Shown: positions 1,958-60,399, counted from the stretch's first letter. The stretch: DNA of 64,000 nt from Octopus sinensis (GCF_006345805.1 NC_043002.1:96782001-96846000), one strand, 5' to 3'. Translations and numbers: made by a program. The notes: a model not told the origin generated them from the letters alone.

Positions 1958-2083
1958 AACTTCTCATTGTTTTCATGTCATCGTTGAGACATGATATTTC
2001 GTCACAATCCTCCATAGATGGGTGTATAACCGTATGTTGTCCGGTACAAAAGCATTTTGCTTGATAGAAACAATCGCTACATT
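1958..2083 (-). CDS. Cys-rich secreted protein paralog 1, exon B (126 nt, phase 1-1): (E)CSDCFYQAKCFCTGQHTVIHPSMEDCDEISCLNDDMKTMRS
   Basis: Acceptor atgtatttcctttacag, donor gtaagt, open frame with 6 Cys; same length and Cys pattern as 25103-25228, same pattern as 52452-52574. Confidence 0.88.
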
Positions 2084-2810
2084 CTGTAAAGGAAATACAT
2101 TTATGAAGGCTTCAAAATAGGTTATCTTCGTTTTTGACGAGGTGGTTCAGTTTATATGGTTTAGCATAAATTCTGCTTGAATTAAATTCCTCCAGTCATA
2201 TTTGAATGTTAGATCTTAGTACGAATGTTAGATGTCGTTAGTGTCGTGATCGTGTGAATTACGAAAGCGCTCATGAGCAGAGGCCAGCAGAGTGGTCAAT
2301 ATTGACACCTTGTTTTCTTTATTATCAACCAAGCGTTCGATAAACAGCTGAAGCGACTTTGAGCCTTAAACGTGCTGGATGATTGACGAACATCACCTTG
2401 GAAAACGTGATAATTAATTTCCAATCAAATATCGATGTAATTAGTATTTAGTAGACATATATTTCACTTTAAACATTTCGACTATATCAATGTCATGCGA
2501 GTAAATTTCTATTGTATTTTCCTTTCAAATTCGCTTACTATTTTCATTCATTTTCTTTAAATATTAATTTTATTTTAGAAATTTAAGTGATGGGGATGGA
2601 TAAGTTATCAACTATTCCTTGAAATGTTCAATGATGTTAGAAGTTTACCGACTTGCAACTAAGAGGGATGCAAATGTTCATGGATATGACGAATACGTGT
2701 TTTACAAGTTACCCGGAAAGAAATGGAACTTTTAAGGGGGTTATATCAGGATCGTATACATCCATCGTGTTCAGTGCAATAGATGATAACGTAAGAATAT
2801 TGAAACTTAC

Positions 2811-2877
2811 CATTGTCACCAAACATATGACATTTAGGAATGATAAGGAAGAACAAAGTTACCGCAAATGTATACAT
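2811..2877 (-). CDS. Paralog 1 exon A (67 nt), signal-peptide-like: MYTFAVTLFFLIIPKCHMFGDN
   Basis: Acceptor ttctttactaacag (TACTAAC branch site), ATG at exon start, hydrophobic core, phase-1 donor gtaagt; same length in paralog 2. Confidence 0.85.
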
Positions 2878-3244
2878 CTGTTAGTAAAGAAGCACAAATA
2901 AAATGTCTCATTATATTCGGCATTTATTTAATATTGTTGCAAAATTCCTACGAAAAGCCAATCATTCAAACAATATTAACATTCAGATATGAGGCTGGTG
3001 ATCGCCTCCGGCATATACACTGTCTCTCATACTTCAGTGGCCGACACTATTATTACGTGTAAAATACAGAGGTAAATGAATGTCACTGTGGCCTAACGGT
3101 AATACTGGGGTATTATGTTGCTGTTGAGGGAAGTTATAACGCTGTGAATGACATATAGAAGTACGTATTATACTTAGCTTAGCGTCGCATGTTACAGAAT
3201 AAATAAAAGAATGTCTAATTTGCTTAGTAATTAATATTCTTTTC

Positions 3245-3365
3245 TCCTCTAGGCACAAGGTTCGAAATTTTGGGGGCTGGAGCCAGTCGATTATATCGAC
3301 CCCAATACGCACCTGGTACTCAATTTATCGACCTCGAACGATGAAAGGCAAAGTCGACCTCGGCT
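3245..3365 (-). mobile_element. SINE family B fragment (gtcgactttgcctttcat-type core)
   Basis: Matches copies at 47540-47715, 47935-48355 and 54370-54560. Confidence 0.75.
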
Positions 3366-4506
3366 GGAGATTACATATATGAAAGCCTTGATACAAAAAC
3401 AGACAAACGTAGCTGTCAGTATAACGTTGCAATCGCGATTACACATTGGAATATATTCATACACTTATGTAGACTTGTATACAGATAGACAGATATATTC
3501 ATAGCTACATGAATATACGCACATATACCCATGTAGACATCAGTGTGCATAAGAATATCTTCATATGGAAGGTAATATATACGTAGCCAGTAACTAGGTC
3601 GTTGTTGTGCGACAAATATCCTGAAGTTTCATCAATTAAACTGAATTTGGTTTTAATAGCCTTTTTGCGTTAGTAATTAGGTAGAAGAATTCGAAAATGC
3701 CAATTATAATGTATAACAACAAAATATAATGGCGAAAACGTAATTCGAACTAGCATCAACTTGATAGAGCATTGCCGGTCACACAGCATTCGACAAACTG
3801 CATGCAGTTCCATTTCAGTTCAACTAAATAAATAAATAATCAAATAAATGATAAAACGCGAATCCCTGGTGGGAAAATTTATAAAAGTAACGCATGAGTT
3901 GCGCGCAAATCTAACAAAAAATTAGTTTTCTAAGAAATGAGTTTTCAGTGTGAGGATTATTGCTGATACAATTGCAACTACCAAACAATACGATATCAAT
4001 CAGAAAGAAGGGCAGAAAGTCACATAGCATGCTAAGTAGGGAGTCTGCAAATTTTACTGGACCTGCTAGAAATATCAGCCAAATCTCCCTAATATCGTAT
4101 TTTATTTCATAAATGATTAGATAAGAGGGAAAGACTATACCTGAAAAAAAAGTAGTAGATGTAACAGCCACAAATAGATTATATTTTGATTACCTTTTTT
4201 CTTTACTTAATCACTGATGTAACTTACATTACAATAATAAATATATGAATAATTATTTTAATTATTTTAAAGTCATATTCCACCTATGAGATAAAATGTA
4301 ATTTTACGCAAAATATATTCTCGATGTGATGAAAGTGTAGATTAATTACAAGGGAAATATATTCCGAAAATCATTATAACATTTCTTTATGTCACTTAAG
4401 TATATAAAAGTATATAAAAAGTATATAAAGTATATAAAGTATATAAAAGTATATAAAGTATATAAAAATGTTAAATTCTAAATTTGCTTCTACGCATGTA
4501 ACTCAC

Positions 4507-4526
4507 CTTGAAATCCTGAACGTGAG
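4507..4526 (-). other. Putative 5'UTR micro-exon, or 3' end of first exon, of paralog 1
   Basis: gatatttcag|CTCACGTTCAGGATTTCAAG|gtgagt; perfect donor, identical at 32276-32295. Confidence 0.55.
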
Positions 4527-57969: not shown

Positions 57970-58361
57970 TACTAGCATTATCGCCCGGCGTTGCTCGGGT
58001 TTATTTCGATCCTTTAGAATTGGAATTTTTGAAAAGTAAAAATTTGGCATTATGTAGCTTGTTATTCTCTTTAAGTGAACATTTTTCTGGTTGAAATACA
58101 CCGAAAAATGGCGACACAGCAGCAAAAAAATCGTAAAAAATAGGGATTTTCATAGAAGAAAAAGCACCTTTTTGATGTAAATAATGTTTGGTCTTAACAT
58201 GGTCCGATTTGAATTTTATCTTCTACGGAATGAAGAACAAGCCTTCTTCTATCATACTCTCAATTTTGGTCAACTTGCTCCACAGGGTCTCGGAGGAAAT
58301 AGTGTTAGTTGAAGGCTACCAAACTTGTCACACACAGACAACTTCAGCTTTATATATATAG
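57970..58361 (+). mobile_element. Helitron-like non-autonomous element
   Basis: Starts actagcattatcgcccggcgttgctcggg (similar start on the minus strand at ~49260-49292), ends tttatatatatag. Confidence 0.55.
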
Positions 58362-58497
58362 TTTTATTGTGTTAGATTATCAAAGAGCCTAGATAAAGAA
58401 GTGCTGTTTGTTCTCGCTTGAGATTTAAAACTAGAAGAGCGTTTACCAACTCTGACCTTGTAAGTGATGCTGCATGAGCCGATACTCTCGTTCTCTC

Positions 58498-58934
58498 TTT
58501 CTCTTTTACTCTTTTGTTTCAGTCATTTGACTGCGGCCATGCTGGAGCACCGCCTTTAGTCGAGCAAATCGACCCCGGGACTTATTCTTTGTAAGTCCAG
58601 TACTTATTCTATCGGTCTCTTTTGCCGAACCGCTAAGTGACGGGGACGTAAACACACCAGCATCGGTTGTCAAGCAATGCTAGGGGGACAAACACACACA
58701 CACAAACACACACACATACACACACACACACACACACACACACACATATATATATATATATATATACATATATACGATAGGCTTCTTTCAGTTTCCGTCT
58801 ACCAAATCCACTCACAAGGCATTGGTCGGCCCGGGGCTATAGCAGAACGCACTTGCCCAAGATGCCACGCAGTGGGACTGAACCCGGAACCATGTGGTTG
58901 CTTAGCAAGCTACTTACCACACAACCACTCCTGC
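58498..58934 (-). mobile_element. SINE family A, full length
   Basis: Reverse complement is close to 448-848. Confidence 0.92.
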
Positions 58935-59720
58935 AATATGTACATACTTACAATGTTCTGTTCATATTGTAATTTAATATCTAAGGGATAGGAGGTGGAG
59001 CGTCTACTGCTTCATAGGATTCTAGAAGTAGAGCTAAAGTGGAGTTTGCAGGGTTATGATTGTTTGGGGTTGACATAGTATATTTGGTGGGCAGGGGGGT
59101 TGAGGGAGTTGACCGTGGGATGTAGCTTATAATCTACGTGTCTAGTAATATTATTCGTATCACCTATCATTGCCTATTTCAGTGGTGGTTATAACCGTAT
59201 CGCTAGGTTGATTAAGGGTATTAGGTGAAATATTAGGATTAGGGCTGGTGGTGTTGGTAAGGAGGTTTAAGGTTATCCTAGGGCTATGGGTGGAGGGATG
59301 GGGGTTAGGGTGTGTTGTATTAGTGTGATTGCTAGTTACTATGTTTCTTATACTTCAGATGTCAGGTTATAACGACAATATTAGTTGTGGTGGAATAGGA
59401 AAATTTAATCGATTGGGGGATGCAGAATTTTCCAAGAGGACCAGTAATGTTTTGTTTCGGAAACAGCCCGACCAGTTTGGAGAGAAGGGACTGATAATAT
59501 AAGTGGCATACTTGAAAATGAATAAGTATGGTGGGGTTGCGGTTTGTTCAACAGAAACCCTTCAAAATGGTATCACAGCACGGTCGCATTCCAATCTTTG
59601 AAACAAGTCAGAGAAGAATTGGTAATCTTATGTCAGTTTAGTGAATAAATATGAACTTCTCAATATTGTTGAGTTAAGATGACATCGAATCAAAATTCTC
59701 CTGTAGAAAGCTATACATAC

Positions 59721-59732
59721 TGTTTTGTTCAT
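59721..59732 (-). CDS. Candidate start-codon exon of paralog 3 (exon 59721-59787; coding MNKT)
   Basis: Acceptor ctttatgttttctctctctttcag, ATGAACAAAACA|gtatgt phase 0; yields signal MNKTIALYLLLVISSIVADVNA and a 141-aa, 12-Cys protein. Confidence 0.6.
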
Positions 59733-60399
59733 TGCATTACCCAGCTAATCGTTATTATGAAGTTTCACGACATCGAAATAGCGTGCACTGAAAGAGAGAG
59801 AAAACATAAAGGATTTTATGGCACAAAATCAATGCTATTTGTACAAGGTTTTAGGGGATGCTTGTATTGCTGCAAAAGGTCGAGGTTTGCTGTCGGGTAG
59901 AATTTTATTAATTTCTTTTTTCATAGAATTTGCATCGCTACTCTCCTGAACTTCCTACCAGTCACAAGTCCGTTTATTCTATGAGCTTCTTTTTTTTTAA
60001 ATGCATTCTGTTCAATGGAACTCATCACCATTGTTTTGCTTTTCTCCTTCAAACTTTCTGTCGAACAATAAGCTTTTAGAATTAGCAGCCCTATTGCTTT
60101 CCTTCTGTGTAGTCTCTTTCGTTGGTCTCTAGCTCTGTTTGGAGCAAAATCGTAAAAAAAAAAGACAAAAATATCCGTCTGGAAGTTCGCAAAAGGATTA
60201 TACTAAAATCGAATATCATTATTTTCGTAGCAGCATTACGTCTCATTATATAGTTTGTATGTGTGTGTGTGTGTGTGTGTGTGTGTGTGTGTGTGTGTGT
60301 GTGTGTGTGTGGTGTGTGTGTGTGTGTGTGTGTGTGCGTGTATGCGCGTGTGTGCGTGAGTACATATTAAATATATATATATATATATATATATATATA

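Follow-up and report, generated by a model that had tools for sequence, protein, structure and literature searches.

Tandem genes for small, putatively secreted twelve-cysteine proteins of an Octopus-restricted family in Octopus sinensis

Introduction

A stretch of 64,000 nucleotides from Octopus sinensis, G000:C6:96,782,001-96,846,000 in its own genome, was analysed. This stretch is referred to as the window and positions are counted from its first letter unless a genomic coordinate is given. A preliminary description of the window had proposed that three sets of short minus-strand exons form a tandem cluster of genes for small secreted proteins with 12 cysteines. These three paralogs, P1, P2 and P3, are described here together with their relatives elsewhere in the same genome and in other species, and their products are compared with known protein families and folds. 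The description is computational throughout.

Exons and proteins of paralogs 2 and 1

The coding exons of P2 are as follows.
25906..25972, minus strand: P2 coding exon A, 67 nt; ATG and signal-peptide-like leader MYTFAVTLFVLILPKVVMKTIL; ends in phase 1; donor GTAAGT
25103..25228, minus strand: P2 coding exon B, 126 nt; cysteines 1-6
18543..18662, minus strand: P2 coding exon C, 120 nt; cysteines 7-10
16839..16906, minus strand: P2 coding exon D, 68 nt including the stop codon; cysteines 11-12; the C-terminal residue is a cysteine

The P2 exons have AG acceptors and, in the order A, B, C, the donors GTAAGT, GTAAGT and GTATGT. The ATG of exon A directly follows an AG acceptor with a branch-point-like CTAAC. 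When joined, the four exons form a 381-nt open reading frame (ORF) encoding 126 amino acids. The same four-exon structure had been given in the preliminary description, and the translation obtained here was identical to it letter for letter with the AG and GT sites in place. An independent gene model of the same length from O. vulgaris, the 'hypothetical predicted protein' P0002, is 96% identical to P2. Exon B differs between the two species at 1 of 126 nucleotides and exon C is 100% identical, thus only 1 of 246 nucleotides differs over exons B and C, and introns 1 and 3 show 2-3% mismatches. The five amino-acid changes between the two proteins are confined to the leader or to exon D. Intron 3 of P2 contains a tandem array at 16964-17635, made up of 11.2 copies of a 60-bp unit that are 99% identical; fewer copies are apparently present in the aligned intron of O. 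vulgaris.

The exons of P1 straddle the start of the window.
2811..2877, minus strand: P1 coding exon A, 67 nt; MYTFAVTLFFLIIPKCHMFGDN; located by tblastn of the P2 protein against the window
1958..2083, minus strand: P1 coding exon B, 126 nt; located by the same tblastn
G000:C6:96780825-96780697 and 96772960-96772893, minus strand: P1 exons C and D, just upstream of the window start; located by a search of the animal's own genome

Exons A and B of P1 were therefore found inside the window, where they had been placed before, and exons C and D complete the gene outside it. Exons A-D joined give an intact protein of 129 amino acids. In a maximum-likelihood tree P1 groups with LOC128248058 of O. 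bimaculoides and is its ortholog; both coding sequences are 390 nt long and keep all 12 cysteines. The same tree places P2 with its O. vulgaris ortholog and P3 on a long branch, with P1 and P2 together sister to LOC128248166/167 from a second cluster at 10.2 Mb. A P2-like exon D (ACRVDHNFAEDDYEVYKGRVEC) was also found in O. bimaculoides at L033:1439-1504 (CM046606.1), 8.5 kb upstream of LOC128248058. This suggests that O. bimaculoides has a counterpart of P2, for which no matching protein turned up in these searches, and the presence of this exon implies that the duplication giving P1 and P2 is older than the split between the species.

Paralog 3

Three exons were placed for P3.
52452..52574, minus strand: P3 exon B, 123 nt; cysteines 1-6; canonical splice sites
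51806..51937, minus strand: P3 exon C, 132 nt; cysteines 7-10; canonical splice sites
46814..46881, minus strand: P3 exon D, 68 nt; VCNVGEILSKRRKFNYKKLDEC followed by the stop codon; good polypyrimidine tract and AG

Exon C was among the matches of the P2 protein in the tblastn search of the window, and exon D was found by scanning for the pattern 'AG, two bases, Cys, 12-30 codons, Cys, stop'. The three exons join through phase 1 junctions with the frame open and the full 12-cysteine framework kept. A 69-residue O. vulgaris model, P0005, has its initial Met close to the end of exon B and shares both the B/C and the C/D junction with P3, and exon D is identical in O. vulgaris.

The first exon of P3 is another matter. 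The preliminary description had reported a 141-residue P3 protein. This could not be reproduced: no exon with an ATG and signal peptide was found in 52575-64000 or in the next 30 kb. A profile built from 11 family signal exons gave no match when run against the minus-strand frames of this same region, nor did tblastn, and the profile recovered exon A of both P1 and P2 at E~1e-11 as a positive control. Only one 103-nt ATG...GT segment, 55294-55192, would give a product of 141 residues, and it was rejected as exon A; it lies in an interspersed repeat. This repeat, at 55180-55310, is young and probably resembles a short interspersed nuclear element, with 2,552 first-look candidates genome-wide and 39 other scored copies at 97-98% identity. 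Position 59787, at which the cluster had previously been ended, is preceded by an acceptor-like CAG; there is no start codon, and one of the frames runs for 10 codons before a stop. No family promoter or leader element (see below) was found upstream of P3.

It had also been stated that the last coding exon, of 68 nt, is identical in P2 and P3. The likeness is one of length only: 35 of 68 nucleotides and 7 of 22 amino acids agree, and the P2 exon D sequence occurs a single time in the window, with no second copy. The proposal of three tandem genes for small 12-cysteine proteins thus stands in that the genes are real and spliced and that P1 and P2 are intact, and it fails in that P3 has no demonstrable first exon. 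P3 may be a decaying copy or relic, or it may use an unrecognised 5' exon. The intron between exons B and C of P3 is mostly filled, at 52040-52400, by a long ATC/GAT-type trinucleotide microsatellite, which generates spurious poly-His, poly-Asp and poly-Ile ORFs of 140-180 amino acids on both strands.

Cysteine framework, gene architecture and selection

The number of residues between successive cysteines is 2-5-1-13-4-11-6-14-4-12-19 in P2 and 2-5-1-12-4-11-6-14-4-16-19 in P3, which reproduces exactly the framework reported for these two proteins. Measured over P1, P2, P3 and four O. bimaculoides members, the family spacing is 2-5-1-12/13-4-11-6-14-4-12..16-19 with a C-terminal cysteine. All 12 cysteines are kept in 15 of 15 aligned members, which share 25-70% identity (25-30% between clades).

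An architecture of four coding exons, with all introns in phase 1 and an intron 1 of ~0.5-0.8 kb, is found in P1, P2, LOC128248058 and members of the 10.25 Mb cluster. P3 fits this architecture for exons B, C and D only. Exon A encodes a 22-residue hydrophobic leader, and exons B-D encode a mature chain of ~104-107 residues and ~12 kDa. Exons B and C each have a length divisible by three and every intron is in phase 1, so exon skipping keeps the reading frame. One database member, P0018 (97 amino acids), has exon B joined directly to exon D, which gives a product with eight cysteines.

Hydropathy analysis showed a single N-terminal peak at residues 3-13, the only strongly hydrophobic 11-residue window in P2, and no other hydrophobic segment. 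P1 and P2 have neither N-glycosylation sites nor dibasic sites. Their mature chains are acidic (isoelectric point (pI) 4.8, net charge -6 to -7), in contrast to the basic chains (pI 8.3-9.0) of P3 and the other clades. Over the mature chain the comparison of P1 with its O. bimaculoides ortholog gave a non-synonymous rate (dN) of 0.11, a synonymous rate (dS) of 0.26 and a dN/dS of 0.42; the comparison of P1 with P2 gave a dN/dS of 0.38. Judged by their sequences, P1 and P2 are intact and under purifying selection.

Promoter and leader exon of P1 and P2

Each of P1 and P2 has, upstream of exon A, a promoter and an additional exon.
32276..32470, minus strand: P2 promoter and non-coding leader exon; TATAAA at 32436; upstream ATG at 32370; last exon base 32276, before GTGAGT
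4507..4701, minus strand: P1 promoter and non-coding leader exon; TATAAA at 4667; upstream ATG at 4601; donor after 4507

Both leader exons are homologous to the first exon of the RefSeq model of O. bimaculoides LOC128248058, an extra 5' exon that lies 1.7 kb upstream. P1 and P2 agree at 99% of the ~195-nt block of promoter plus leader, and the counterpart in O. bimaculoides is about 97% identical. The block is far better conserved than the coding exons, for which dS is 0.44 when P1 is compared with P2 and 0.23-0.26 against O. bimaculoides. Six further copies of the promoter and leader, at 71-80% identity, are present in the 10.18-10.28 Mb cluster, some of them ~3 kb upstream of family genes.

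In O. bimaculoides the ATG of the leader is in frame and leads to a RefSeq protein of 163 amino acids with 34 extra N-terminal residues. The O. sinensis leader is 7 nt shorter, which puts the conserved upstream ATG out of frame. The conserved leader element is, for this reason, non-coding, and LOC128248058 probably owes its N-terminal extension to an annotation error, RefSeq having taken the upstream ATG in the leader as the start codon. The upstream ATG in O. sinensis opens an upstream ORF (uORF) of 37 codons which ends in exon A and overlaps the main ATG (4601-4507 joined to 2877-2811 in P1; 32370-32276 joined to 25972-25906 in P2). This uORF may regulate translation and may, we infer, also account for the failure of automatic pipelines to call these genes in O. 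sinensis.

Two ORF fragments for reverse transcriptase lie among these features on the minus strand, one at 28737-29927 in the intron between the leader and exon A of P2 and the other at 7229-8260 between P2 and P1. Both match Pfam RVT_1 (E 4e-22 and 3e-06 respectively). An ORF resembling a Tc1-like transposase at 43267-43677 and ORFs with CCHC knuckles at 12719-13303 and 22572-23132 have no Pfam match.

Family size, distribution and annotation

Sequence for 60 kb beyond the end of the window was examined for further members of the local cluster. Two more genes were found there, 33-61 kb beyond the window end and on the opposite strand.
G000:C6:96,879,294-96,894,184, plus strand: fourth local gene; four coding exons; resembles O. 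bimaculoides LOC128248178
G000:C6:96,902,094-96,906,584, plus strand: fifth local gene; exons C and D at 96,902,094 and 96,906,486

There are three family members within the window, as first described, and at least five in the local cluster, so that 'cluster of three' understates the locus. Matches to exons B and C of the family were found at other places on the same chromosome, C6: ~10 genes at 9.93-10.29 Mb, one at 13.14 Mb and ~6-7 at 19.06-19.26 Mb, in addition to the local genes at 96.77-96.91 Mb. The total is ~20-24 genes in four clusters on one chromosome, a lower bound as the census was made with three single-protein searches of the animal's own genome.

When the family profile was run against 1.84 billion representative proteins it matched 16, of which 14 are small Octopus proteins with the same framework, and relatives of the family were found only in Octopus. 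P0009 (1639 amino acids) and P0017 (1301 amino acids) were rejected as relatives; they are long, repetitive and unrelated, and their spurious scores are summed over repeats. P2 matched P0002, P0003 and P0004 with E values of 3e-79 to 4.5e-39 and with similarity over the full mature chain, and the profile search added 12 further Octopus members at E values of 1.8e-34 to 9.2e-4. After P0002, the proteins closest to P2 are O. bimaculoides LOC128248058 (69% identity) and LOC128248167 (57%). XP_052824409 and XP_052824997 are independent gene models from O. bimaculoides. Every named member belongs to one of three species, O. bimaculoides, O. sinensis and O. vulgaris, and is called 'uncharacterized' or 'hypothetical'. 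The true homologs comprise LOC128248058, LOC128248166/167/169/170/178, LOC128248081, LOC106872966, LOC106869804, LOC106872050 and LOC106869794/796 of O. bimaculoides, P0002 and P0005 of O. vulgaris and LOC118763715 of O. sinensis. They share with P1 and P2 the structure of four coding exons, the 12-cysteine spacing and a leader of the MY.. type; they are database predictions only, with neither a name nor a Pfam family.

In O. sinensis, P1, P2 and P3 themselves apparently lack an annotation or carry a different one, as no exact copy of them turned up in public protein data (see Discussion). The genes had been described as hidden, and in O. sinensis this is partly borne out; in O. bimaculoides and O. 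vulgaris, however, RefSeq and GenBank already predict orthologs and paralogs. The suggestion of a lineage-specific family of secreted effectors agrees with the restriction to Octopus, the hydrophobic N-terminal leader and the 12 cysteines, and an effector role in venom, antimicrobial defence, pheromone signalling or gamete recognition is conjectural. A search of the searchable library by locus, accession and topic found no paper on these loci or on the family.

Comparison with known families and folds

Pfam gave no family for P2 or for any of the 15 members, even at E<=10, and a sequence-profile search of the PDB likewise gave no match at E<=10. The earlier remark that the framework is not that of a named family is upheld to the extent that there is neither a Pfam family nor a PDB sequence match.

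A structural model was made with AlphaFold2. Using four sequences the confidence score (predicted local distance difference test, pLDDT) was 42, and 15 diverse members were then used. With the 15-sequence alignment the overall pLDDT was 62.9, residues 50-100 reached 70-82, and the predicted structure is all beta, one hairpin following another. Foldseek found no match for this model in the PDB at E<=0.001, the best E value being 0.016. Ranks 1-8 were all pairs of fibronectin type I (FnI) modules, with E values of 0.016-0.2 and probabilities of 0.85-0.99 for a query model of pLDDT 63. For the FnI pairs (8-9FnI, 2-3FnI and 4-5FnI) the template modelling (TM) score was 0.4-0.52 per target and 0.3-0.4 per query; vWC and NELL structures came further down the ranking.

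The Foldseek ranking raises the possibility that the mature chain is a tandem of FnI- or vWC-like hairpin modules, acting as a matrix- or collagen-type binder or as a structural protein of, for example, the egg capsule, sucker lining or mucus, and not as a toxin or signalling ligand. An FnI module, of about 45 residues, has four cysteines and is built of one two-stranded and one three-stranded antiparallel sheet. What the predicted model has in common with FnI pairs and vWC domains is a stack of disulfide-pinned beta hairpins over ~85-90 residues, a likeness that is weak and not significant. Occupation of the first eight ranks by FnI pairs and the hairpin-chain form of the model favour this reading, but the best E value is only 0.016, the TM scores per query are low on a model of limited confidence, no member matches Pfam fn1 or VWC, and an FnI pair has eight cysteines with other spacing. 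Nor is the module duplication that it calls for supported. When the exon B half was aligned with the exon C/D half as a candidate internal duplication, three cysteines fell in register with an hhalign probability of 0.06%, and the candidate was rejected. The matrix-module reading is accordingly considered quite unlikely. A hairpin motif, G-x-C ... C-x4-C, is present in both the exon B and the exon C halves and hints at an ancient duplication, without statistical support.

UniProt names one member, A0A0L8H3R2 (P0007), a 'UPAR/Ly6 domain-containing protein'. If this automatic name were correct, the family would consist of divergent Ly6/uPAR proteins, with the three-finger fold of LU domains, that act in the manner of Lynx/SLURP-type modulators of nicotinic-type receptors. 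The family does resemble Ly6/uPAR proteins in being small and, as predicted, disulfide-rich, all-beta and extracellular, in having C-x2-C near the N-terminus and in belonging to a tandemly expanded set. An N-terminal C-x2-C-x5-C combined with an all-beta, disulfide-rich chain recalls LU domains, which we take to be a lead only and not a test. The Pfam profiles UPAR_LY6, Toxin_TOLIP and their relations matched 0 of the 15 members at E<=10, hhalign of the family profile with human CD59 (its sequence verified against the PDB) gave a probability of 0.03%, and there were no three-finger structures in the Foldseek PDB top 50. The family also lacks the adjacent CC, the C-terminal C-N motif and the hydrophobic tail of the glycosylphosphatidylinositol (GPI) type, and it has 12 cysteines against 8-10. 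With no Pfam, hhalign, fold or motif match the UniProt label was set aside as unsupported, and membership of the Ly6/uPAR family is very improbable.

Conotoxin-type frameworks, the contact pheromone of squid, which is of the beta-microseminoprotein type, and defensin-like families are all lineage-restricted tandem families of cysteine-rich proteins. Like the octopus family, for which the signal peptide is putative, they combine a signal peptide and a fixed cysteine scaffold with loops that vary, and they are tandemly duplicated and confined to particular taxa. However, no homology between them and the octopus 12-cysteine family was detected and its spacing matches no searchable family. In particular, Pfam PSP94, the family of beta-microseminoprotein and the squid contact pheromone, matched 0 of the 15 members at E<=10.

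Discussion

The best explanation of these results is that the window contains three head-to-tail members of an Octopus-restricted family of small, secreted, cysteine-rich proteins, two of which are intact and constrained; we give this a probability of roughly 0.8. That the exon sets are genuine genes of the octopus 12-cysteine family can be held with greater confidence still.

Several observations count against this explanation. Three concern the products of P1 and P2: the signal peptide is called from hydropathy only, the overlapping uORF could limit translation of both genes, and confidence in the structural model is only moderate overall, with the last 21 residues below a pLDDT of 50 and left unmodelled. 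The exact sequences of P1, P2 and P3 are also absent from a collection of 15 billion proteins in which other O. sinensis RefSeq proteins are present. The remainder concern P3. Reading upstream of its exon B, the in-frame ORF contains no ATG before a TAA, and scans for phase 1 ATG...GT segments turned up no candidate whose leader looked like those of the family or whose donor was good. For a member of this family, P3 has an unusually hydrophobic end to its exon B. Between P3 and O. vulgaris there are two differences in 323 exonic positions; both change the amino acid, and their rate is that of the flanks, 0.57%.

A rival view is that the exon sets are chance open frames or dead relics and not functional genes. 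P3, with neither a first exon nor a family promoter and with neutral-rate divergence from O. vulgaris, is the best case for such a view, and the absence of the O. sinensis proteins from public sets also agrees with it. P1 and P2 argue strongly the other way: their ORFs are intact, length and all 12 cysteines are conserved across three species, dN/dS is ~0.4, the splice sites are canonical, independent annotations in sister species match, and the promoter is ultra-conserved. It is therefore extremely unlikely that chance frames or relics account for the locus.

Returning to the reading as a secreted, cysteine-rich family, the most likely product is a secreted extracellular binding protein of ~12 kDa with six disulfides. 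The exon A leader would direct the chain to the endoplasmic reticulum and would then be removed. The 12 cysteines would pair into six disulfides that lock a stack of beta hairpins. Neither P1 nor P2 shows a transmembrane segment, a GPI-type tail or dibasic sites, and the product would presumably be released from the cell in soluble form. Outside the cell, the variable loops between the cysteines would bind a target in the way that toxin-, pheromone- or defence-type mini-proteins do. This general mechanism of a secreted, disulfide-locked binder is rated a little better than even.

More specific roles are harder to defend. One is that the proteins are components of the venom, made in the salivary gland and used on prey. 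The circumstantial points in its favour are that the family is tandem and lineage-restricted, that a rigid cysteine scaffold carries variable loops with 25-30% identity between clades, and that the pI ranges from 4.8 to 9.0. Secreted families of the immune, reproductive and chemosensory systems fit these points equally well, a dN/dS of ~0.4 gives no sign of an arms race, and no paper in the searchable literature mentions these loci or accessions. A role in venom is consequently unlikely, though less so than the matrix-module and Ly6/uPAR readings. A more far-reaching proposal is that the family represents a new octopod fold, all-beta with six disulfides, whose ~20 paralogs are ligands that co-diversified with octopus-specific receptors (such as the expanded chemotactile or nicotinic-like ones) or serve as species-specific signals in reproduction, pheromone communication or venom; P1 and P2, as a subfamily, would be expressed from their shared promoter and leader in a single dedicated type of secretory cell, and the uORF would add translational control. 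This combination is speculative and is put forward as a long shot.

Cephalopod genomes contain many taxon-restricted genes of unknown role. The family described here is at present an annotated orphan and not a functional discovery. For annotation, the analysis supplies coordinates for three apparently missing O. sinensis genes and a correction to the start of LOC128248058. The ~195-nt promoter and leader element offers a handle on the cell type in which P1 and P2 are expressed. A compact, tandem family on one chromosome, with a rigid 12-cysteine scaffold and no relatives found outside Octopus, makes a tractable candidate for an octopus innovation in secretion, whether the biology concerned is that of saliva and venom, mucus, reproduction or chemosensation.

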